Origin: Podarcis erhardii
Lineage: Eukaryota
DNA: 64,000 bases
Assembly (NCBI GenBank): GCA_964252035.1
Contig: OZ176208.1
Direction: 5' to 3' (one strand)
Below the pieces are notes generated by a model. That model was not told the DNA's origin and searched no databases. It was given only the letters and a program-made list of their open reading frames with translations. The translations under genes were made by a program, and so were the position numbers. Of this stretch, positions 1-35,879 are shown piece after piece. The first letter of the stretch is position 1. Every line of letters begins with the position of its first letter.

Positions 1-251
1 AGAACTAAAATAGCCAATGTATTTATATGTTAGGTTTGTTCACTTGTAACACTAAACCCATAGTGTAGCATGCACATTCGCTCTCCATGCTCTCTCCTGT
101 GCAGCCAGGATCAGGAAAAGGTGGTAAATACTAGCCATGAATTTTGGCTAGTTGGTACATAGGAATCAGATATTAGAGTTTAACTAACCAAATTATGTTT
201 TGAAACAAGCCAGCTTCCTAACCTACGGTTTTAAAGTTGGTCTGTTTAGAA

Positions 252-695
252 CAGGGCTGGCAAACCTGTGGCACACTGACTAATCTTGACCCACAAGGCC
301 ATTTCGCACGCCCACTTGTCCATCAGCTAATATCACTGAGTGAAATCAGCTGCTTATTACAAGGGCAAAGTACCTCCCTCTGTTATCTGTTTCAGCAGCA
401 TGTTCACCTGGTGAGCAGAGAGTTATAGGATCTGGCTGGTAACAGGCATACTCAGCCAAAGCCCTGCAGTACACTTTAAACCACTGATCGGGCTGTTTGC
501 AAAAGGACTTTCAACTATCCCTTGATGGTGCTTTGAAGTCCCAAAAGTGCAGGCTTCAAAGCACAATGCTACCTGATGCCCCTATGACATCAGGTGATTG
601 ACAAGTGGACAGCACTACTCACATGTCAAATTACAACCTCCAGAGGTGGGGAGATAGGGATTTGGTTTACCAGTCAGAAAAATGTCCCCAGCCCA
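252..695 (+). mobile_element. hAT-like non-autonomous DNA transposon (MITE)
   Basis: Starts CAGGGCTGGCAAACC and ends in degenerate CCCCAGCCCA; flanked by 8-bp gtttagaa (244-251) and ctttagaa (696-703), a 7/8 TSD match. Confidence 0.6.
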
Positions 696-1474
696 CTTTA
701 GAAACTAACCAGAGTCTGTTTTAAGCTCCAATCTCTAGCTGATCAGTAATAAGTCAGGTTTCTTTAACACTGGAAGTAAATACTAGCAAAAGCCTTCTCA
801 GGCTGTCCAGCAGAAGCTGAAGGGGTGAAGCAAGAGCCTTTGTTTGAGTTTGTGTACATAGTGCTAAACCACAATTTTACTTTTGCATGTGAACCAGCTC
901 ACTGTGTTTACATCTCTCTCAAGTAAATACTGAACCTTATGTTTCTTTCAGCATGGCTCTTCCATTTACCCTTTAGATTAAAATACCATTTGGCTGCTTT
1001 GCCATCTCCACTTTAATTTTACCAAATCAGACTGTTTTTAACATTCAACTCAGTAAAGTTCTAATGTTTACACCTTTGCTACAAACATTACATGGCCCTG
1101 CACTTGACTCAATATTAAGTTAAAATCCTGAGAGCATTGATGTGCTGCAGAGGAAGTGCAAACTTTACAGCTTTTTAGTCTACAAAGTATTTGAAGACAT
1201 CTTGGATTTTACACCAAAAGAAGAATTCTGCCCATAGAAAATCCTCCCTCTCAGAACCAAGATATACACCACATAAAAACAATCAATAAATGATTGGATG
1301 AGCTGCCAGCACTTCCGTCATATGAACAAGAAACAAAGCCAGAAACACTTCTGAGCTCAGGGCTGGATAAAAGTACACGCCCTCTCTTGCACCTGCATAA
1401 CTGTTCTGGATGCAAAAGCACTTATGGAAACGAACCCTTAACTTATTATTTTCAAAATGTTATAAGATGTTTAC

Positions 1475-1780
1475 CATCCTCCTCTGTGGAAAACCCTTGA
1501 GACTGATAGTGAACCAGATGTGGGTCTGACTCATTTGGTTTGTGCCACTGAGGTTTGCCCACAGGCCTGCTAGATGGAGGACCCTGTGGTTGCTGCTGTG
1601 AAGCTGAAGTCCCAGGGGCTTCACTTGACCGTGCCACCATCCTAGACCTCTGAAGTGCCACGTTGTAATCCGGAGGTTTTCGGGCTGGGTGGGAAACTCC
1701 TTCAGCAAAGTCAGCAATAGGTATTCCTACATAACCAGGCGGGGTTGGTGGTGGTTCACGATAGCGGCCCTCTTTTCGAG
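1475..1780 (-). CDS. RAPGEF2: Penultimate coding exon [11 protein letters not shown]...STEED (306 nt), with PPGY and PPDY WW-binding motifs
   Basis: Acceptor tttactgcag, donor G|gtaaac, phase 1-1. Confidence 0.97.
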
Positions 1781-4051
1781 CTGCAGTAAAATAGTGCATC
1801 ATCAGCAATGATAATCATTTACATATATTTGTTACAACTACTATCTATGCCTGTACTTAGTTCTATTATGTCATAATCTTGGTAGCTCTGATGTGCTTCC
1901 AAGGGAGTTGAACAACTTGGCATTAAAAACAACCACAGTATGGACATGAGGCAGCCCAAAAGTAAAGGCATTTACATTTCACTGAGTCCAAATGGGAGTT
2001 GAGCACATTCTTAAAACTTTCCCATTCAAATCAATGGAATCTAAAACTGTTTAATTCTGGCTGGATTATACAGGCACAGCCATACCAAATACCTATACAC
2101 CTACATATTAATTATATATATATATATTATGCAATTAAAAACATAGACATAAGCAAAGCTGCAAAGAAAAAGAACAAGTGAAATAGAAGATAACTAATAC
2201 AAAACCTGAGCCAATTATAGAAAGCAGCTTGTGATAACACTTAAATTATGTATATAGGGCATGGTGACATCTTGAAAAAGAATCTCAAACTTAGATTTGT
2301 AAAGAACACAGTTGATAAAAAGACACTGTGAAGCATAGACAATATATGACTGTGCTTTCATCTTCTAGCAAAAAAAGAGAAATAGCACTAACCCACTTTG
2401 CATATTGAAGTATATACAGTTCTCTCACTTGAGGTGATATTCTGACAAGATTCATGTTTTGCCTAATTCTCTCAGCATAGTTAAATAAAAATAAAAAGTA
2501 TTTATAGTTCAAATAATAAAGCACATATATTGTGTTCAGGTTCGGATTCTGTACTCCTTCCTTACACATCATTAATATACTTTTAAATGCCTATATTTTC
2601 TTTCCAATGTCTATATTTTCTTTCCAAAAAGAAGTTATCCAAGATGGTTCACAAAACAACATAAAGAATAAATACATGAATTAGCTGTAATAAGTGAGAA
2701 GGAATCTTAAAATCCAGGAAGTAAAATATTTAAGATAAGCCAAAGAAATGTGCTCCCTATTATTGGGGGGGGGGCATGGCAAAAATACGCAACGACTTAA
2801 AAGTGAGGGCAGGAAGATCATTATGTGATCATGTAATCGTGTAGCCCAGGGATGTGAATTTCAGGACAAGGGACTAAATGCAGTCCTTTGGACCACTCTA
2901 GTCAACCCTTGGCCACACACCTCACTGGTTCTGCTCCATACCCATCCTCTGAATGCCTTTGCCTGGTTGGAATATGAACTGTGATCATGTTTCTTGCTTG
3001 CCAAAATGGAGGATGGAGAGAAATCTCTCTGTCTGCATCTGCATGCATACATGTTTGTGTAAAAAGGAAGTAGCCACTGTTATTGATTACTGAATCATTT
3101 TGGTTTGTGCATATAGCTGATGAGTGCTCGAAACGTCAGAGAGAAAGAATAGTGTGAAGTCAAGAATATATCCCAGGGACCGCCAGTCTGTTTAGCCAGT
3201 GTCAGGGAGACATTTCCCCTTTCCCATATTTCTGTTGAAGGTTGTGGGGTTCCCCTTGTCATTCTACACACAAGAATCTGTGACATATACAAACTGGCAT
3301 AAAAAAGTGTGCTGTCAGGAAAGAAACATAGGAAACAGCCTGCATTTCCTAAGGCAGGTTATTAGCCCATCCAGTTCAGTTTTATTGCTAACTGGCAGCA
3401 GCTCTCCAGGGTTTCAGACAGGAGTCTTTTGGCAGCCCAGAAGATGCCGACAACTGAACCTGGACCTTTTGCATGCAATGCAGTGCTCCACTCCAGATCT
3501 AAAGCCCTTTCCCATTTATATCCTGAAATCCTATAGCAAGATTTATTTCAAATCCTTTCATCTCCTGCTCTGTAACACCAGCATCTTCACCTTTTTATAT
3601 CCCTAGACAAGTTTAAATCTGCATTAGTGATTAAGGCATAGAAGAAAATTGTGCTAAACAACTGCATGGAGGTATAGGGCAGAGCACACTAGGGCTATAT
3701 TACTAACATACACACAGAGAGAAAACTGTACCCCCATATTATAAGACATTGGCCTAAGCATATTAACAAACTAGAAAGGAAAAGAAAACAAGAGTTTATG
3801 TTAATGGCTGAAATGTGGGAAGTTCTGAGGCAAGATAAAAAAAAAGTAACTAAAAAATAACAATGGAATATCTGCAGGAGGAAGCATCACTTCAGCACAA
3901 AAGGCTTTACTGAAAAAGCAAAACACAAGTTAAGACTATGAGCTGGCTATATGTTTTGCTTAAAAAAAGATTAAGGAAAAATATTTGTAAAATAAATTCA
4001 TATTTATAGCAAATATGTAGGATACTTTGTGGTAGACAAAGGTAAACTTAC

Positions 4052-4611
4052 CAATAAGACCCTTTGTATTACTTGTTGACACAGCTATATGAGCTGGCAT
4101 GGGAACTGGCTTTGAATCCTCTGCTGTCATAGATGTTATGCTACTGGTTTCAGCTTCAATTGACACATCCTTCCCACCCCTCCGTTTTATGGTACCTGTA
4201 TCACCTTCAGAGTCCTCTCCCCAGTAGCCTGTGGAGGATGCCCAGCTTGCTCTGGACTGTGCTTGATCAAGGCCCTCCCTACCTTGACTCTGCCTGCCAT
4301 ACTTTGTGCCATGATCGGAGAACATCATCGGGTCCATGTGGCTGCCTGAGGCCCACAGTCCTGCCCCATCGCCTGAACTATCGAAATGAGCATGTCCAAA
4401 AGGAAGAATCTCCCAACTTCGCTGGTGCTGTATTGTCTGTATGTTGTCATGGGAACCACTTGAACAAGAAGTCCAGCTGCCACGGCCACTATCCGCTGCA
4501 TCAAGTGATGCTCGATCTCCCTGATCCTGTGACAGCTCCTCAGTGCTAGGAGAAGAAAGCATGGTTGCCCCAGCATACAAGCCTCTGTTCTCTGACAGTG
4601 GTGGGTAGTAG
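4052..4611 (-). CDS. RAPGEF2: Exon [11 protein letters not shown]...NTKGLI (560 nt), contains the DSGRGS beta-TrCP-type degron
   Basis: Acceptor gttcttctag, donor G|gtaagt, phase 2-1; lies within ORF 3960-4706. Confidence 0.96.
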
Positions 4612-6153
4612 CTAGAAGAACACAGGAACAAAATAATTAATAGGCATAAAGCAACAATGTTGCCACTAGCAATTAGAATATCAAACCGCAGTAACAATTT
4701 GCACAAAGCATTTTGTTCAATGTGTAGTACAGATCAGTTAACTCTAAAGACCTGTGCTCAAATTCATATGTTTCAATAGCTGCCAAATATACGTCTAATG
4801 AAATTATTGTGATATTGTGCGCTAACTGAACACTAGATCAGAAGTGTCATTGGGAGTTTTTCAAAGATTTTTCAAATTGTGAATCTGCTAAGAGTATTAG
4901 GAGCATGCATTTCCCCCATTCTTCCCCTAAAATCTCTTGGAGATGCAGGTATATCATCTAATACTTATCAAAATAATTGGGGAAAAGATTTAGGACATTA
5001 GTCACGAAACACTATCTGGAATTGGATATGACAAAAATGTCCCTCAACAAAAAATCAGTGTACATTTAAATGAAACTTTTTACAAGTTCATTTTTCATTG
5101 GTGCTTAGAGGTCTCTTGGTGTCTTAAATTGTGAATTCAGCCCTTTAATATTTAGTGAAAGAATTTGCATTGTATTCATTCTGTGGTAGTATAAACACAA
5201 CTTTTCCCAAATATTGATTCCTTAATTTTGAGAATTATATAAATGTAGTCCCCAGCACTAACATTTTCTAGATTTCCAATTTAACATACTAATTTGCAAT
5301 GTCACCTCCTCTCTCCTTTTCCCTTATTGACAATAATTTACTTTTCTTTGTTCTTCTTGATGCAGTGCTTCTCTAGTCCCACTTGCTGATTCAAGTTGTA
5401 TTTATTATCTTCATTATTCAACAGAATAATATTTGATAAGTTTGAGTGTTTGTCCTTTCCAGTATCTGAACTAAATATTCCTTCCATCTGTTATTTCTTT
5501 TGATTAGCTAATGTTTTAACCACAGTTTCTTATTCAACAAGATAAGGGTTTAAATGAGGTCCCCCATTGATATTTTGTTAATTTTTGCCTAAGCAGTAGT
5601 GTGAGAAACTTGAATTCCATGATTTTACTTGAAATATCTGGGTGCATATTAGCTAGGATTTTAAACAGATTTCCAATTAAAATAAATGTCTCTCCTATCC
5701 TGTAAGTTGCAGCTTCTTTTAAACTAATAAATGTAACTGAGATTTCTCTCAAGCATTCACTAAACACCAACTCAAAAACTTGGGACCATTCTATTTTTAG
5801 ATCCTATTCTAAAAGACACCTCAGTCCAAGCTGATCAAAGTTTGTACAAATGTATATAATTACACAAGCGTTCTTTTAAGAAGACTACTAGGTTTCTCCT
5901 CCCCATTCCTTCTGGAAGACCCCTACATTTTAAAATAAATAACAGGATATTTTGGAAAGATTGGGCCAAGAAAGCATTATGCATTATGGGACACAGGTTT
6001 GCAGTGTTTTGCTTTTCCTTTAAAGGCAGAGTCACTCAAGTGATGCCTTGTAACAGAATACATGTTCCTAAAATCTGCTCATGAGAGAAAAAGCATCTAC
6101 AGCTCTAGAGTAGGCTTTTAATAAATGTAATTACACTGATATGTACTACCTAC

Positions 6154-6379
6154 CCTATACTGTACTGATCTGGTTCAATTATGGCTCTTCGGTCAATCCT
6201 GCCCACTCCAAGATTAGTCTCCACAATGCTGACGGAGTGCCTCTGTCTCCTGTCATCATGTAGTGATACCGGCATGGAGTCAAATGAAGAATTGCTGACA
6301 ATGCTGGATCTGGAAGAAATTTCACTGTGACCAGAGTCTGAAAAGTTATCCACTGTACCACTGGGAGCCAGAGTATAAC
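6154..6379 (-). CDS. RAPGEF2: Exon [10 protein letters not shown]...PDQYSI (226 nt)
   Basis: Acceptor ccctgtacag, donor GG|gtaggt, phase 1-2. Confidence 0.96.
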
Positions 6380-6978
6380 CTGTACAGGGAAAAGTGATTA
6401 TAACCATTTTCATCATAAAATTTTCAGCATTTGTATAAATATTCAAATTATGCAGCCCCTGTACCAAAATTACTTTTTAAATTGTTGTTGTTTTAAATCT
6501 GAGAACAAATAATTTATAAGGGGGTATTTATAGTATCATCTTATTTTTAAGATAGAGAATTTGGGGAGAGAAAACATTAACAGAGGATAATTTAAAGATA
6601 AAAAAAAAATTACTTGCAGTTTCAATAGCTAACTAACATGATTCAAATGGGTTCTACACTGTATGCCTTTGCCATCCATCCAGCCAGGATTGATGCATAT
6701 GGCAAACATAAATGTGGTCTCATTTGTAAAGGAAGCTTCATCATAATTCCAAAAAGAAAATACTTTGCATGAAGATTTTTATTCCACACAAATTGTCTTC
6801 ATCGTGATACCCATATACATTTCTACCCATCCTTGATACTGTGGGAGGCTGCACACATGAATGGTTTCAGCAAATAGGGCTGAACAACTAATATTTAACA
6901 ACATTATGGTTCTTGGCACTTGGATATGTGGATCGTTAGGCTACTTTATCTCCTTCCCCAACTGCATCTGAGAAGGTA

Positions 6979-7050
6979 GGAACATAGGTTGTGCTGAGTT
7001 AGGCTGCAGGTTCATTTAGCTCAGTATGCCTGCACTCAGTATTGACTTGT
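6979..7050 (-). mobile_element. Degenerate 3' fragment of a Squam3-like SINE
   Basis: aacatagg...ttcatttagctcagtat resembles the tail of the copies at 12211 and 41001. Confidence 0.35.
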
Positions 7051-7264
7051 ACTCAGTATTGACTTGCATCAGGATTTCTGACAAAAAATGCTCTAGCTTG
7101 CATACTTAGAATGTGACAACTTTGTGCTTTTAGAAAATGTCTGCCCATGCTAAACCACAACTGACTACATATTTGGCATCTTAACTAGGTTCAAACAGTT
7201 ATCACTAACAATTACAAGAGAGGAGAACTTGTGAGAGGTGAGGAGTATTTAGACCCTGGCATAC

Positions 7265-7417
7265 TTTTCCTTGGAGAGCTCTGTGGCGAGGTGGGAGGAG
7301 AAGATAACTGTGAAGACGCATTTGAAATTGTGTCCTCTGCTTGTTTCTTATGACGATCCAAGCTTCCCTCTTCAGAGAGTGAAAGAATTTTCTTTAAAGC
7401 TTGTGGAGAGTTTATGC
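7265..7417 (-). CDS. RAPGEF2: Exon [10 protein letters not shown]...PQSSPRK (153 nt)
   Basis: Acceptor ctttattgaag, donor AAAA|gtatgc, phase 1-1. Confidence 0.93.
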
Positions 7418-8562
7418 CTTCAATAAAGAAGAAATAACACATCTGATATAAATGCATGCACTTTTTCTTGCATATTCAAATGAGGCCATTCCATGAACCA
7501 CTGATACTACCATTACTATGATATTTTAGCCCACCCTTCTTTTGCAGATCTGAGGGCAGTGTACATTATACACCCACATTTATTATCACAACCCCCAGTA
7601 AGGTTATACTCCAGCCACTCTCCACACCAACGTACAATTTATTCTAAGAAAATAATATGCAATTAATAAAAACAAATTTAAACATAACTATTCAGCCCAA
7701 GTAAAATGTAGATTAGACCAATGTTTCTGTTTTACATTCACTTGGAAAATGTGTTTGGTTCTTAGTTCTCAGCCATTCATGGAAAAACATTGACTACAGC
7801 TAGTATCCCAGGTTATCTCCTCCCTCAGGCCTGCAACTGAGACAGAAACCTGCAGCTTAAACATGTCTGAAGTGCCATTAAATTTAGAAGGTAAATGGCT
7901 ACCTCACTGATTCCATGGTGTTATATATATAAAATCTATGTCTTCAAAGTAAGTATAAATGAAAAAGAGAGTTAAAGAAAATATAGACTCAACAGACATT
8001 GATCACAAGATCAGGAACCATGGTTAAAATTGGATAGGTGTAAAAATGTGCAGTGGATGTCATCTGCTTCAGAGTGCTGTCAAGACTGGGCTTGCATTAG
8101 CAGACCCCAACATAGGAAGAAGAGGAAGATTGGTGGGGACTAGAATCAGAGGTGGGAGGGAGGGGCTCTCTAGCAACTGTCAGCTCCCTTAGCACACTAC
8201 AGTTCCCAGGATTCTTTGGGGGAGGAATGACTTTTTAAAGTGGGATGATACTACGTTAAATGCAAACTATAGATGAGACTTTCGTGTGATCTCTAACATT
8301 GATTCTGTTACACTTTTTAACTGAACCTTCCATTTCCAAAACACAACAGTAATAACAATGTATTGGAACCTGTGTTTTCCGCACCTTTGCTTGCAGTTGC
8401 TCAAGATGCATACCTGTCATTTGTGAAAATACAATCCTGAAACATGAAACTTCCACTAGTAATTTGAAAACATTGTGTTTTTTTAATGCTCTTGAGAATT
8501 TGTTTAACCATTTTAAACATAGAATTGTTTTTCTACTGAACAGAACAATCTGCAATACTTAC

Positions 8563-8748
8563 CAAAGGGTGGAAGGTCTTTGACTGGTACTTTCTTACGA
8601 GAGGGATAAAGTGATACAGCAGGGACCTGCAGTGCTTGGTTTGCTTTGTGCTGCTGTTGCTGCTGCACTTTCTGTTGGATCCCTGACCTATGTGCGACTG
8701 GGGATGTTTCAGGTTTTCCAGACCGTTTTTCCCCTGGAGTCTTGGGTA
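8563..8748 (-). CDS. RAPGEF2: Exon [11 protein letters not shown]...QQQQQ...KDLPPF (186 nt)
   Basis: Acceptor ttcatttaaag, donor G|gtaagt, phase 1-1; the Q-rich linker is shorter than in the recalled human sequence. Confidence 0.93.
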
Positions 8749-9200
8749 CTTTAAATGAAAAAGCAGAATTAAGATTACAGTTAAGACTACCTCAAGAGTA
8801 CTTGATTTTATATTAAACGGTGTCCGGAAGAATGGAAAAGAGATATCCTCTCTTGGTTGAAAAACCTTGGAATTTTTTAGTCCTCTCATTCAGCTATAAT
8901 ATACTACCACAAACTATAGTAAAATGATGCCCTTATCAGCAGTTGGAGAGCCAATTAGGTAATGTATGCCATTTAAGAAACAAGTACCACATATGTCAAC
9001 TGTAATATTGTCTACAATTTGCAATGGCATGGAATAACTTGTTTTCTAGCGATCAGCTTGATTAGAAACGCATACTTCTCTCAATGATGCTGTGGCCAAG
9101 CCTAAGCCTGAGGGACAGTTAAGCTGCAGGCTAAATAAAGATAAATTAACAGCTCATTTGCCATGACTGAGGTGCACACCCAAATAAGAAAAATGCTCAC

Positions 9201-9424
9201 ATGTATTGCTGGCTGGTTCACATTGTAGAGAGAGTGCCTGAAGGCTCTCTTCATCCATTTCCAGATCCAAGTTGGAGAGATACTGCTTGACTTTCCGAGC
9301 CATCTGAGCATCTTCATATAGCTTTTTGGCATTGAGGAAGGAGCTGCGGCGGACCCGCTTTTTATGTCCACCTGTTTGTGCAACATCAAGGACTGCTGCA
9401 TTTGTACTGCCTTGACTGAGAGAC
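9201..9424 (-). CDS. RAPGEF2: Exon [11 protein letters not shown]...CEPASNT (224 nt)
   Basis: Acceptor ttcaccccag, donor T|gtgagc, phase 2-1. Confidence 0.96.
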
Positions 9425-10677
9425 CTGGGGTGAAGAAAGACAAGATGACATGTAACTTAGCTCATCGCTGCATCCTTCAATGACTTGAAACATGCAAAGG
9501 TCTGCATGAATGTCAGTCTATGGTCAAAGCTTACATGCCTCATTCAAGTAAGTCATACAGCTACAATAGGAAAAGGATAAAAATAAAGAACAACAATCAG
9601 TTGCAATTGTGAATATGGATTCATTAAAGTCAGCCCCTGAGAATGACTCTGCTCCAAGTATGAAATTCCATGTTATTGGGAAAATGGTTAAACTCTCTCC
9701 CAGTAGCCTTGAGTATTACAAGGACAGAAATATTAAGGCAGGCTCATGCAGCAAGGTGTCTCAGACCAGTAAACAGTGGTCAAGCCTCCTGAAACTCAAA
9801 ATCCACTACTCTCAAAATCAGGCAGGAAATGTCCACTTTGTACTTTTCAGGTGCCCTTATTAAAACACTTAATTCCATCTGCAATATGCCAAAAAGTCTA
9901 CTGCATTTTCATTTCCCCACTTCCCTCTCCTTAAATAGGACTTCATGTTAAATAAAAACGTTCAATTAGTTAATGAGGAAGCATGCAAATTTGGATGTGT
10001 TTATGTATGGGAGCTATTTTGCTTCTAATATGTTAACAGCAATAATGAGGGCTGGTTTGTAGAAAGAAAATGTAGTTAGTTGAGCTGTTAAAAATCACAA
10101 CATTGGAATAAAATTTGTGGATTTGGATGGTTCTATTAACTTGTGTGATGTATAAATTTACTGCTTATTTTTATCTGAACCACCATCATGTAACCCCATT
10201 TTGGTATACTCTTCCCATTGAGACTGGTTATGTATGTACATATGTTAGGGATAATGCAAGTTGAGAGGCTAATCTGCATAACAGCCAGCCATTGTGCACA
10301 TTCATCATGACTCATGGAGAATGTGCACCTCAACTGTCCATAAAGATAAAATTGTGCATATTTCCTGGCCGATATGCATACTCTCAAAAACATGCATCAT
10401 TTTTCTCAGCGTCATTTTTTACATTCTTTGAGCAATACGCATGTTATCCTGTCACTAGATAATACTCTACAATAGTATGTCCTCTTTTCCATGCTGCTCA
10501 GCTGTTCTGCACAACCAACTGACTCTGGCATCTCTTCTCCACAACCCAGCTGTTTCCCCACTGTTCAGCATGTTAATGGATACATGGGAGGTGAGTGTAT
10601 GCAAATGGACTGGGAGCTGAGGGGTGTATGTGTTAATTCATTCACACAGACGTTCCCAGTGTCTTTATGCAGGATGG

Positions 10678-10818
10678 NNNNNNNNNNNNNNNNNNNNNNN
10701 NNNNNNNNNNNNNNNNNNNNNNNNNNNNNNNNNNNNNNNNNNNNNNNNNNNNNNNNNNNNNNNNNNNNNNNNNNNNNNNNNNNNNNNNNNNNNNNNNNNN
10801 NNNNNNNNNNNNNNNNNN
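10678..10818. other. Assembly gap (141 N)
   Basis: Run of N in the sequence, next to an (ATGT)n tract. Confidence 1.
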
Positions 10819-30773: not shown

Positions 30774-31098
30774 CTAAAGAATAATGAACTCACTGAGTTA
30801 AACATGTATAAGCAATGACAACTACTTGATAATGAGATTTTAGGAATATGCCATGGGATTCTAAGCTTGTATTATTCCACAATGTGTTGTGTACTGTATT
30901 TTCATTATATTCTACAGGTTTAACAAGTCATAAATCATACTACGTTTCAAGCATTTTACAACTTCCTTTTGTTTATTATATTAAAAATCTTTTTTTGTTA
31001 AAGTGTCATTTAGTAATATTTTGGAAAACAAAAGACATGTTAAAGAAACTGCAAATGCCACTAACATCTTCCTCTGCTGGGTTTCCATGGTAGCTTAC

Positions 31099-31276
31099 CA
31101 ATATCATCATCTGTCCTGTCTATTGGGTCTTTCTCCAGGCAGTCTCTAACAATATCCCTGCTCATTAGAGGATCAGAAGCCCTCTCAATATCCTCTTCAT
31201 CATCATCATCCTCAGAATCCACTGCTGTCTCTGGTAACCCACTCAGATCCATATCGCCAGCTTCACTCTCTGTGGC
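31099..31276 (-). CDS. RAPGEF2: Exon [17 protein letters not shown]...DDDI (178 nt)
   Basis: Acceptor catttcag, donor G|gtaagc, phase 0-1; overlaps ORF 31061-31252. Confidence 0.97.
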
Positions 31277-32020
31277 CTGAAATGATCATTGAGAAAAAAA
31301 ACATTCAGAGGCCTCTTATAATACTAAACACAACTCAAAACATGAACATGAAGCGAATTTAATATTTACTCCACAGACAAGCCAAGGTTCATCTTTTCTC
31401 AGCACTTTTCCATTACCTGTGGGAAGTATATAACAGGAATTCACTGTATTTTGGGTAAAGTAGACACACCTGGAACATACTTAAATCGAAAGCAAGATTA
31501 ATATATTTGTGGGTGCTGCTTAGTCCCATTTTCAAACCCATCTAAAGTATTACATGTTCGCGATGAAACCTAGAACACTGACATCAATTAATCACTCACT
31601 TCAGTCATGAACTCAGCAGGTGAGCACCACCAAAGGCAAAGCAGAGCTACCAAGAAGCAAATGGGATGCTTCAGCATGCTTTGGGGAGCTCTATGTTTTG
31701 TAGAAGTACAGATAATTTTCAAGAACAGAAACCTAAGAGCCTCTACCCCTACTCCATGCAAAGGAACAGCTCCATGAGGACTTGGCATCCTCACTGTCCA
31801 CAGAATAATGTCTGATTGGGGCAGAAAAATTGGGGTGCTGCTGGAATGCAATAGGGTATCCTACAATAGGACATGGATGGAACCGTGAATAGAAAAACTC
31901 CACGCTGCAGCATCTGGATGCAGGTCACATTTGTATCGTAAAATTGCAAACAGCCAGTCTATCAGATATGGGAGTTAACTTCCAGACACTGTATGTGTAC
32001 CAGAGAGGAAGAACACTATC

Positions 32021-33872
32021 GGACTTCCGGGATAGCGCGAACGGGTAATGGCGGATTCCCTCCGAGCTCTGGAGGGAATCGGCTCCGCTAAGGACGGGTC
32101 TTGCCGTGCCGGCGACACGGGGACCCTTAGAAACCGCAGGCGCTGAAGCCTGCGGACATGGAGACTCGGTGGGCACCTTAAGCGCCCTCCCCGACCCGCG
32201 AAGAGCCTTTTTAAAGGCTACGGAGGGGACCGGAGAGTGGCGTGGAGCTGAGAGTCGATCGCTGCCTTGGCGGAGCGAAGCCGCGAGCCATGACCGGAGA
32301 GCGCTATCTTTCTTCCTGAAATTTGGACTGAAAAAACAACTCGTGAGTAGAAGGAAATTTTGGCACTAAAAGTTTTATCATTGAATTTGAGTACGAGCGG
32401 GGGATGTGTTAAAAAGGAAGTCCACACTCCCCCCCCCCCACCAAAAGACTTAAAGCAAGGAGAGGAGCACTAAGTCGGAAAGACTCTGGTGTTGAAAGGA
32501 GAAAGAACACTTTCATAAATTGGTTGAAAAAGTTACTTGTGCTGGAGTGAAGAGAGGGGAATCCCAGAGGTTTTGCTTTTGGCGGACCCCCCCCCGAACC
32601 CGGGCAGTGCCCTGCTTGGGAACCCGAGAGAAAAAACAAGGTGTTTGACAGCTGTCAAAAGAGCTGTCAAACGGACGTCAGCTTGGAAATTGAGTTAAAA
32701 CTGTGTTATAACTATATTGTTGGGACTAAAAGTGTTACATTAAATTGACTGGAAACAAACTAATTCTGAATAACAAAGTAACGAACTGTTGGAAAAGAAC
32801 TATGATGGAAATCCCCCTGGAGGGAACTAAAGACATTGCAATGGCTGCGGAAGGAAAATTACTGGCAGAGATAAAAAAAATGTTTTCCCTGGTGGGAGCT
32901 CTGCAAGAGCAGAGCTTAGCCATGAGAGATCAACTGATGACCTTCAATCTTAAACTAAACAAATCTGTTGGTGGAGCTAACCGGATGGAAAAAGAATCTG
33001 CAGCTGCAGAAAAAGAGACAACTTCAGAACTGGGGGAAAAAGAAGAAAAAGAAGAAGGAGTTCAGGAGGAAGAGAGCAATCAAATATCTGTAACTTTTGG
33101 GAGGAAAAGAAGTGAAAAAGACAACAAATGGATCACAAATCTGCAAAGAGAGAGAAAGATGGAAGTCCCTGGAACAACTGAAACATTAAGCTACGAAAGA
33201 ACGAATAAGTATGATGGAGACTTCTTCTTTAAGCTGCAACATGGGAGATCTGTTGATCCTGGACAAAGACTGTTTTTGTTTGAAAAATATGAGGAACTGG
33301 TGACAGAATTCCTTCGAGAAGAGAAGATCAATAAAAAGGACTATAAACAAAATTGCTGGAGAGTGATTAACGGGGGCCTAAGGGCCTCTGATGTGAGAAA
33401 TCCGGGTTAAATCTGTTTTTTTTTCTTTGGGATATTAATGTGGGAAGGGGCAAATACCGGGACAGAGGGGGAGGGGAGTGTAGAGTGGTAAAAGTCTGGG
33501 GTTTAGAATAGAAATATTATTGTTTTTTGATTTAATATAAAGAGCAAGGAATTTGTGGGAGAGAAATTAGGCCGACCTTAGAGAAACAATTTAATATGTA
33601 TAATGGGATTTAAAGTAAAAATGGATAAAGGATAAATTATAAGAAAAGATATGAATAATATTTAAGAGATTTGAACAAATAACTTGCTGAGATATTTAAT
33701 GAAATGGGAAGGTGGCTGGGGGGGTGGGGGGAAGTCACTGAAAGAGGGTAATGATTGTAAGGGTATGAAACTACAGATATTCTGTTTTGTGTTTTGTGTT
33801 TATGATATATGTTTGTGTTTGTTTAAAAAAATTTTTGAAAATCCAATAAAAATATTTTTTAAAAAAAAAAAA
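32021..33872 (+). mobile_element. 1852-bp non-autonomous L1-like retroelement (ORF1-like only), antisense to RAPGEF2
   Basis: Perfect 15-bp TSD aggaagaacactatc (32006-32020 and 33873-33887), AATAAA at 33845, poly(A) tail, CpG-rich 5' end and a single long ORF. The L1 assignment is inferred from architecture. Confidence 0.85.
32802..33410 (+). CDS. 202-aa ORF of the retroelement, coiled-coil and charge-rich, ORF1p-like
   Basis: First ATG at 32802 within ORF 32745-33410; leucine/methionine heptad pattern (LLAEIKKMFSLVGALQEQSLAMRDQLMTFNLKL) followed by an E/K-rich tract. Homology not verified. Confidence 0.5.
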   Translation: MMEIPLEGTKDIAMAAEGKLLAEIKKMFSLVGALQEQSLAMRDQLMTFNLKLNKSVGGANRMEKESAAAEKETTSELGEKEEKEEGVQEEESNQISVTFGRKRSEKDNKWITNLQRERKMEVPGTTETLSYERTNKYDGDFFFKLQHGRSVDPGQRLFLFEKYEELVTEFLREEKINKKDYKQNCWRVINGGLRASDVRNPG

Positions 33873-35879
33873 AGGAAGAACACTATCTCCCAATTCTAAT
33901 CTGCTCTATCAATCATATGGAAATCAGAAAATCCAGCCAACACATGGTTTAAGGTCATTAATAGGTACCCAGAGGTGAATATATTTTATTGTTTCAGTTC
34001 TAAGATGAAACACTTAATAAATCCCAAACATATTTGCCTGCCGTCTGAAATAAAGCTGCTTTTTCTGCAGAAGTAGATTTAATGCCACAGCATCTGCTAA
34101 GCTTCAACTGTTATGATTTGAAGGAGATGAAGTCTATTGAGAATGCTCTGTAAACCATTGCTTTCCAAACTGATGTTTACTAGACTTGGGGCTAAAATAT
34201 TAAAGGTCAGATAGCAGTAGAAAAGGTCAAGTATGTTTTTTTTAAAAAATGTTAATTTGAGATATGAGATTATATGAGATGCACATGCTAGACTTTCCAC
34301 AGATATTCTATCCTTATAGAATTTTATCACTTGTGTTAAGTTTGGCTGAATATGATGAAGTTTCTCTTTTTTACTTTTTTTGGGTGTATGAGTATACTTA
34401 ATCAATTGATTAAAAGCTACCTCCACAGGGTGGCCAGGTTATATGGACAGCTGATGATAATGCCATTAGGTCAGACCATGCATCAAAGTCCAATAAAAAG
34501 TTATAACCACCATATGGATGCTTAATTATTCAAAAGTGGTTCATGGCAGCCTCTACATAAAGACCACATTTTTAAAACTTGCACCTTAACATCCATTTAT
34601 TATTTTTTCAATAGGTAAGAAACAAAGAAGGTAAGTGCCCCTTAAATTAGTGTGGCCAGGCATCGTGGTGTGCTGGTGTACTGACGGCTCCTAACATCCA
34701 AATTGAAGTCTAAATCATGAGGTATGATGACTGCAGCCTTTGGGCAATGTGGGGAAGGTATTGGATGTTTGGTTACCTAGTATTATCCATCCGATCGCCA
34801 CTGTCAGTATTTTTGAAGATACAATGTAGCATTAAAGGCCAGGAATTTGTTACAGACGTGAAATTTGGGATAGCACAACATTCCAAGAAAAGCTTGAATG
34901 CTGCACAATACTACTGTTTTGCAGGGCAGAGAGCAAACTGCTTACCCTTACCCTGCAAAAGTATTAGAATTTTTCAGTATATTCAAAGGGACCTCAATGA
35001 CCTCTTACAAATAATGATTGTAGGATATTTCATATTGGCAAGTAATTCTTGTTTTAAATGGATTTGTCTTTTATGTATAACACATGACATACAATTTTAG
35101 AAACAAACATAAATATTTAAACAGGAATATTCTCAGATTATTGCCGAAAGCATCTCAAGATTCAGCTTCATGATTTATTCAACTCAAAAGGACGTCTATG
35201 AATATATTTTCATTGCATAGTTGCTCTTAAACCTGCAGTATTAAATACTCCATATGAAGCAAATACCGGAAAGAGTTAACTGAGCACACAACACCATAAG
35301 TAATATTTGCAGCTACTTTTTTTTTTTACTCCATAATCAAAAATAAGGTGAACCATTACTTCTGGGTGTCATTTGTGAATGTCTCCATAAGAAGGTGCCC
35401 AAGCAACTAAAGAAAGAAACCACACTCACCAAACCCACAGTGTAGTCAGTAACATTAATATTTACATAATTTACCATTTTAAAAAGAGTAAGTATAATAT
35501 ATATGGATATCAACCTTCTGAGAACTACAAAAGTCTCTTATCTTCCACAATTCATTTTCTAGTTCATTTATTTGTGTCTACTAGACAATGTTAAATAACA
35601 AATGATGGATAGTAGTTTTTATTAAGCGCTTGTTCAATTCAATAAAGTAACATACTCATCTATTTCCCAACCTATAAACAAAGTCACATGCAACAATGTG
35701 AAAACAGAAAGTAGTCTCTAGTACAGCACCACAGAACAAAACATTACAAAGCAAAATATGCATTTTAATTTCTATTGATCACGTCATAAACAATTACTAA
35801 TTCCACATAAGCATAATACCAGCTCTCACAAATACTTTACTGCCCCCTCCTGACACTGTTGTTGCCCTTTCCTTTCAAA

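Follow-up and report, generated by a model that had tools for sequence, protein, structure and literature searches.

A very recent, poly(A)-tailed retroposon insertion with a lizard L1-type 5' terminus, no ORF2 and an orphan protein in a wall-lizard genome

Near the middle of a 64,000-nucleotide stretch of Podarcis erhardii DNA (contig OZ176208.1; the whole stretch is called the window below) lies an 1852-bp element that bears the marks of L1-type retroposition, contains a single long open reading frame (ORF) and lacks a reverse transcriptase (RT). The locus raises the question of what such an element is: a half-L1 (HAL1) in the mammalian sense, reduced to its ORF1, the by-product of a longer autonomous element, a copied host mRNA, or a retroposon with a protein of its own. 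An initial annotation, made from the letters of the window, had proposed a young non-autonomous family that depends on L1 and encodes a shortened ORF1-like protein. Our analysis supports the non-autonomous, L1-dependent family and gives no support to the ORF1-like protein. We consider it likely that the element is a full-length, very recent insertion that belongs to a non-autonomous poly(A) retroposon family present in many copies in lacertid (wall-lizard-type) lizards. This reading is carried by the structure of the element, its multi-copy state, the empty sites of related species, the L1-type head and a conserved protein family.

The element is enclosed by the perfect 15-bp target-site duplication (TSD) that had been described earlier. 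The 15-mer AGGAAGAACACTATC has exactly two occurrences in the sequence, 32006-32020 and 33873-33887, and 0 of 100 dinucleotide-preserving shuffles reached the match count of the real sequence. Contigs from four public runs (Logan) were aligned to positions 31000-34900, and the empty-site, depth and tiling data all come from these alignments. In three other species, single contigs joined 32018 to 33886 and retained one TSD copy, forming precise empty sites with flanks that diverged from the window by ~1-2.4%. Because precise empty sites are present in three related species, the insertion took place after their split. Over the ~1.2 kb tiled, ~4 substitutions and 2 single-base gaps separated the element from the near-identical contigs that dominate in organism A. 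The insertion is very recent and three related species lack it at the orthologous site, in agreement with its earlier description as young.

In X1, the probable source sample, a left-flank contig (record 1) extended 15 unaligned letters past 32020 and a right-flank contig (record 8) began at 33873. The two flank contigs have the 30-letter (k-1) overlap expected for an empty-allele path, suggesting possible heterozygosity of the source individual at this locus, a hint from contig geometry in which the overlap letters are not displayed. No second copy of the element or of its family was found in the 64-kb window by blastn or tblastn.

The contig data support the element as a member of a real multi-copy family with an ORF2-less structure. 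Between 635 and 748 contigs per run fell on the element in organisms A, B and C, in identity classes that ranged from at least 99% to below 90%. Word depth over the flanks was 9-12 (X1), 34 (X4) and 13 (X5), and over the element it exceeded these values by a factor of ~100 to 10,000 in the three species. Summed depth in X1 was ~1400-8000 across the ORF and the 3' untranslated region (UTR) and peaked at 105,000 at 32048-32178; summed depth and contig depth are not copy numbers, and the figures describe contigs and are not a genome-wide count. Near-identical X1 contigs (records 3, 5, 6 and 7, with 0-2 differences each) tiled 32643-33812 unbroken at a depth of 759-957. Tiling at that depth implies that ~60-100 copies share the 5'UTR-ORF and ORF stop-3'UTR junctions, and junctions common to so many copies rule out a single-copy internal deletion. 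Individual anole L1 families comprise ~75-144 copies (PMC3787681).

The junction between the ORF stop and the 3'UTR lay on one unbranched near-identical contig with a depth equal to that of the ORF body (records 5-7), and near-identical contigs tiled the 3'UTR at ~760-960 word depth, continuous with the ORF (records 6 and 7). In organism E (X15, table 7), contigs from other insertions began at 32021/32022 and had unrelated upstream flanks. Position 32021 is therefore the reproducible 5' end of the family, as would be seen with a defined transcription start.

Depth was uneven at the head. The first ~250 bp, a segment that recruited contigs at an 80% identity threshold, showed 10-70 times the word depth of the remainder in all three DNA runs. 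This excess is likely due to a conserved head common to all lizard L1 families and their derivatives; alternatively, a very abundant short derivative composed of head plus tail may be responsible. Smaller depth bumps at 32572-32702 and over the N-terminal coding block at 32834-32964 fit the same conservation logic.

The sequence of the head points in the same direction. At the start of the element a G precedes GACTTCCGG, followed by a 17-nt spacer and ATGGCG, and 0 of 100 shuffles matched this terminal pattern. The conserved 5' extremity of Anolis clade-1 L1 is GACTTCCGGTG-N8-ATGGCG (Boissinot and Sookdeo, PMC5381506), and among lizard L1 families that otherwise diverge, conservation is strongest over the first ~120 bp (PMC5381506). 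The two terminal motifs stand 7 nt further apart here than in the anole. Judged by the terminal motif, which is the part compared, the 5' terminus of the element is of the lizard L1 type, and it is by this motif that the element resembles HAL1 in having an L1-type 5' end.

The 5'UTR was confirmed to be CpG-rich. Its first 280 bp had 65% GC and a CpG observed/expected ratio of 1.07, compared with 0.20 for the whole window. RNA from the first 300 nt folded at -150.6 kcal/mol (z = -4.9), and 0 of 200 shuffles folded as well. An ETS-like ACTTCCGG motif and a YY1-like ATGGCGG motif were both located downstream of the start. A heritable retroposon promoter requires motifs downstream of the start. 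By analogy with established L1 biology, the head is presumed to have internal RNA polymerase II (Pol II) promoter activity. The initial annotation had credited the element with its own Pol II promoter; the match of the 5' end to the lizard L1 terminus (PMC5381506) fits an L1-type internal promoter and is consistent with that claim. A short interspersed element (SINE) was also considered and rejected: Rfam (E up to 1) and tRNA scans of the element were empty, a Pol III small-RNA head was not found, and the element has 1852 bp and a conserved ORF.

The 3' portion was likewise as annotated, with a 460-bp, AT-rich 3'UTR, G tracts, AATAAA and poly(A) at the positions given in Table 1. TSD, AATAAA and poly(A) together make up the L1-type retroposition marks that had been noted. 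No endonuclease or RT motif was present in any frame of the element, confirming the earlier account, and a six-frame motif scan of the 64 kb found no L1 RT or endonuclease. A Pfam search with 8 long ORFs of the window returned nothing. The element was rejected as an autonomous L1, having no ORF2 (APE endonuclease plus RT), no such motif and no other ORF above 87 aa.

Table 1. Features of the retroposon and contigs that carry the empty site (window coordinates)
Feature	Position or source	Strand	Remarks
Upstream TSD copy, AGGAAGAACACTATC	32006..32020	.	Exact repeat of 33873-33887; single copy at the empty sites of related species
Retroposon body, full-length, 1852 bp	32021..33872	+	TSD-bounded; 5' ends of other copies coincide
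5' domain, rich in CpG and strongly folded; putative internal Pol II promoter	32021..32320	+	GC, CpG, fold
Lizard L1-type 5' terminus: GACTTCCGG, 17 nt, ATGGCG	32022..32053	+	Sole match in 64 kb
Rest of 5'UTR: poly-C tracts, length differences between copies	32321..32801	+	
ORF, 202 codons plus stop	32802..33410	+	Sole ORF >87 aa in the element body
Long N-terminal helix, residues 9-76, with heptads; probable coiled coil	32826..33029	+	AlphaFold2, heptad count
Conserved C-terminal block (residues 172-202), ends RASDVRNPG	33315..33407	+	Abuts the stop
AT-rich 3'UTR, two G-rich tracts (~33441-33490, ~33716-33736)	33411..33860	+	460-bp
AATAAA polyadenylation signal	33845..33850	+	10 nt ahead of the A run
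Poly(A) tail, 12 A plus ambiguous first A of TSD (12-13 A)	33861..33872	+	Abuts the downstream TSD
Downstream TSD copy, 15 bp	33873..33887	.	Exact repeat
Empty-site contig, organism B	X4 record 16		8172 bp
Empty-site contig, organism C	X5 record 23		
Empty-site contig, organism E	X15 record 9		

The single 202-codon ORF, with the heptads and the charged tract ascribed to it, was recovered at 32802-33410. The conserved start of the family corresponds to Met14 of this ORF, at 32841: most members begin MAA(E/D)GK, and the subfamily in the window adds MEIPLEGTKDIA ahead of it. Database searches yielded ~20 lizard homologues of 176-215 aa that were 24-61% identical to the window ORF. These were encoded on short Logan contigs of ~0.9-1.9 kb, save for two unnamed hypothetical proteins of Podarcis lilfordi. 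Species-specific subfamilies with a ~200-aa protein on ~1-1.9 kb contigs were seen in several runs.

Conservation was concentrated at the two ends of the protein. Mean pairwise identity was highest in the C block (residues 171-202), at 58.5%, compared with 48% in the N block and 30% in the middle. G32, L34 and Q35 were invariant in the family, and all complete members ended in RASD(V/L)R(N/D/S)PG, their Pro-Gly immediately preceding the stop. Length, start and stop are kept at 25-40% identity, indicating that the ORF is not decaying neutrally. Content of A at the three codon positions was 36/41/39%; lizard L1 ORFs are A-rich at all codon positions (PMC5381506).

AlphaFold2, run with 5 and with 20 sequences, gave a mean pLDDT (its per-residue confidence) of 46-48. 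The helix of residues 9-76 was the sole confident element (pLDDT 82-86 over residues 21-50), and the model was of low confidence outside it. In the best registers, residues 14-61 placed L/I/V/M/F at 8 of 14 and 9 of 13 a/d positions, and on the model and the heptad count the N-terminal helix is a probable coiled coil. The charged tract (residues 61-130) contained 13 K/R and 18 D/E. A 2A-like skipping peptide was considered for the C-terminus and rejected, as DVRNPG-stop departs from the spacing of D(V/I)ExNPGP and some members have D or S in place of its Asn. A reading of the tail as the final codons of an L1 ORF2 was not supported for this family either, since a profile search without restriction on length returned no long protein that carries it.

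In the three species, most copies have E, T and W in place of V188, I189 and G191 (window 33364-33372). The majority reading is RETNWGL, as in P0001 and P0002, and the window copy thus has the less common variant at a site that immediately precedes the invariant tail.

We then compared the protein with L1 ORF1p, which it had been said to resemble. With thresholds loosened to E = 10 for the window ORF and to E = 1 for other members, 0 of 11 family members matched Transposase_22 or the other L1 ORF1 Pfam models, and noise alone was returned. A family profile searched against the PDB (E up to 10) recovered no L1 ORF1p chain; its only hit was neuroguidin, at E = 0.49. A profile search without restriction on length, through 1.84 billion representatives, returned family members only, apart from P0009, a 1336-aa repeat protein that matched in 12 short stretches and was judged spurious. 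A second profile search, through 5.8 billion proteins, returned only ~200-aa members of the same family. Two queries of the ESM Atlas gave no usable match, and AlphaFold2 predicted no RRM-like fold, at low confidence beyond the N-terminal helix. A few short stretches of the ORF resemble ORF1p motifs by eye, a likeness that we do not count as evidence. No search tied the orphan protein to a known L1 protein, and these comparisons do not support descent of the ORF from ORF1. The ORF1-like label, lacking an L1 ORF1p match in the Pfam, PDB and profile searches, is unproven.

These results bear directly on the comparison with HAL1, which PMC5753468 defines as encoding only ORF1p. The coiled coil, RRM and C-terminal domain (CTD) that would identify the product of the present ORF as L1 ORF1p were not found together in it. 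By its sequence, the element would appear to work like a half-L1 yet to fail the feature by which HAL1 is defined, the ORF1p.

From the structure we infer promoter activity, use of L1 ORF2p and a role of the protein in the following way. An internal Pol II promoter would transcribe the element from 32021, and the RNA would be polyadenylated after AATAAA. This RNA would be copied at new nicked sites by target-primed reverse transcription, with the ORF2p of an autonomous L1 acting in trans, and the copying would leave the poly(A) tail and the 15-bp target duplication. The ~190-200-aa protein may coat or escort its own RNA, or dock the RNA to the L1 machinery, as a functional stand-in for ORF1p. 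It would act via its coiled-coil N-terminus and its basic, invariant C-terminus. In the most specific form of this proposal, the ~200-aa protein would be a novel retroposon protein, unrelated to ORF1p or so reduced as to function in another way, that captures L1 ORF2p or L1 ribonucleoproteins; its near-invariant ASDVRNPG-COOH would dock or regulate, and the family would be active now. We offer this form tentatively and regard it as rather unlikely to hold in full. Present activity is suggested by the absence of the insertion in sister species and by its possible heterozygosity in the sequenced animal.

Among the other explanations, a true half-L1 in the strict HAL1 sense deserves the most attention, and we see it as possible while giving it clearly less than an even chance. 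Here the ORF would be a shrunken ORF1 that has kept its coiled coil with short adjoining pieces and lost RRM and CTD, and the element would be an internally deleted L1 lineage. The L1-type head agrees with such an origin, as do the location of the ORF at the place of ORF1, the coiled-coil-type helix that comes first and the L1-like A bias. Against it stand the failure of all 11 members to match the L1 ORF1 Pfam models even at permissive thresholds, the absence of an ORF1p chain from the PDB profile results, the lack of an RRM-like fold in the AlphaFold2 model and the empty ESM Atlas result. The two profile searches point the same way, having found only the family, with nothing above 215 aa save the spurious P0009. 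The coiled coil of lizard clade-1 L1 is well conserved (PMC5381506), so a recent derivative should be detectable. The short form could also be a recurrent by-product of a rare autonomous master with this ORF first and ORF2 downstream. A few longer copies among ~60-100 would be invisible, since contigs lose rare variants, but the ORF stop-3'UTR junction lies on an unbranched near-identical contig at the depth of the ORF body, the species-specific subfamilies in several runs have the same ~200-aa protein on contigs of ~1-1.9 kb, and the length-unrestricted profile search found no longer protein that contains the domain. We judge such a master to be improbable. A processed pseudogene or retrogene, that is, a host mRNA copied by L1, would equally show poly(A), AATAAA and a TSD, and ETS/YY1-type motifs are common in housekeeping promoters. 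It is nevertheless extremely improbable given the hundreds of contigs in several identity classes and three species, the other copies that begin at the same nucleotide, the 5' terminus equal to the lizard L1 consensus, and a protein found only on ~0.9-1.9 kb contigs and in the two unnamed Podarcis models. Contig classes, shared junctions and the reproducible 5' end thus speak for a multi-copy family, as had been proposed, and against both a one-off deletion and a processed pseudogene.

Several observations weigh against our preferred reading of an L1-dependent, protein-coding non-autonomous family. Contigs drop rare variants, and a few master copies that bear ORF2 may exist. The target is purine-rich on the top strand, with a bottom-strand nick at TTCCT/CT and not at the canonical TTTT/AA. 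Comparison with L1 is confined to the terminal motif. A three-copy complex prediction of residues 10-78 scored 0.18, against a mark of 0.32, which speaks neither for self-association of the helix nor against it. The protein database holds intact ORFs only, an ascertainment bias that affects the apparent conservation of the family. Among the 17 differences listed between close subfamilies, 13 were non-synonymous and 4 synonymous; with a neutral site ratio of 3.9, this indicates no purifying selection among close copies, and in these alignments constraint appears only over deep divergence. The element was found in no RNA run examined.

The family on our reading shares features with several known systems. 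Mammals are the only hosts from which HAL1 (Smit 1999; Bao and Jurka 2010, as summarised in PMC5753468) has been described. Like mammalian HAL1, the present element is non-autonomous and multi-copy, with an L1-type 5' end, one ORF at the ORF1 position, no ORF2, poly(A) and a TSD. Unlike HAL1, which encodes ORF1p, it encodes a ~200-aa protein with no detectable RRM, CTD or Transposase_22, and its host is a lizard. It resembles Anolis clade-1 L1 (PMC5381506) in the GACTTCCGG...ATGGCG terminus and in a long 5'UTR whose 5' part is rich in CpG, as well as in A-rich ORFs, AATAAA plus poly(A), and tens to low hundreds of copies (PMC3787681). It differs from the anole element in the missing ORF2, the total length of 1.85 kb and the longer spacer. 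Its 202-codon ORF, moreover, lacks the RRM and CTD, which all vertebrate L1 ORF1p conserve, and its 3'UTR has G-rich tracts of a kind seldom present in anole L1. Polyadenylated Pol II transcripts that L1 ORF2p copies in trans, with TSDs as the result, likewise underlie SVA, other L1-dependent retroposons transcribed by Pol II, and processed pseudogenes. However, SVA is non-coding and composite and processed pseudogenes have no heritable promoter, whereas the family described here has its own presumed promoter and a conserved protein.

Full-text literature searches found no paper on such a family in lizards. The element belongs to a known kind, the L1-dependent non-autonomous retroposons; it is a variant of that kind in which a probable L1 parasite of a lizard codes for an orphan protein. 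If this reading is correct, protein-coding L1 parasites arose outside mammals too, and the family can serve as a natural test of the minimum that a non-autonomous RNA requires to overcome the cis preference of L1. A coiled coil and a short basic tail may then suffice against that preference. Lineage-specific and perhaps polymorphic copies could also be used as population markers in wall lizards.

Further observations concern variation and processing signals within the element. The 5'UTR totals 781 nt, with four upstream ATGs over its whole length. Copies in several species showed internal skips in the 5'UTR (32289>32638, 32318>32653 and 32660>32802). These do not have GT..AG ends and are therefore apparently subfamily length variants and not the result of splicing. 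One X1 contig returned from 32053 to 32022 with CGAACTTCCGGGAAT between, indicating that some copies have the ~32-nt terminal motif block twice in tandem, in the manner of a monomer; according to PMC5381506, the 5'UTRs of anole L1 lack such duplications. Outside the element, the window contains a run of 141 N at 10678-10818, which is an assembly gap or masked sequence. Two potential premature polyadenylation sites were seen in the element, an ATTAAA in the 5'UTR at 32739-32744 and an AATAAA inside the ORF at 33330-33335. Sites of this kind reportedly occur often within the ORFs of lizard L1 (PMC5381506).

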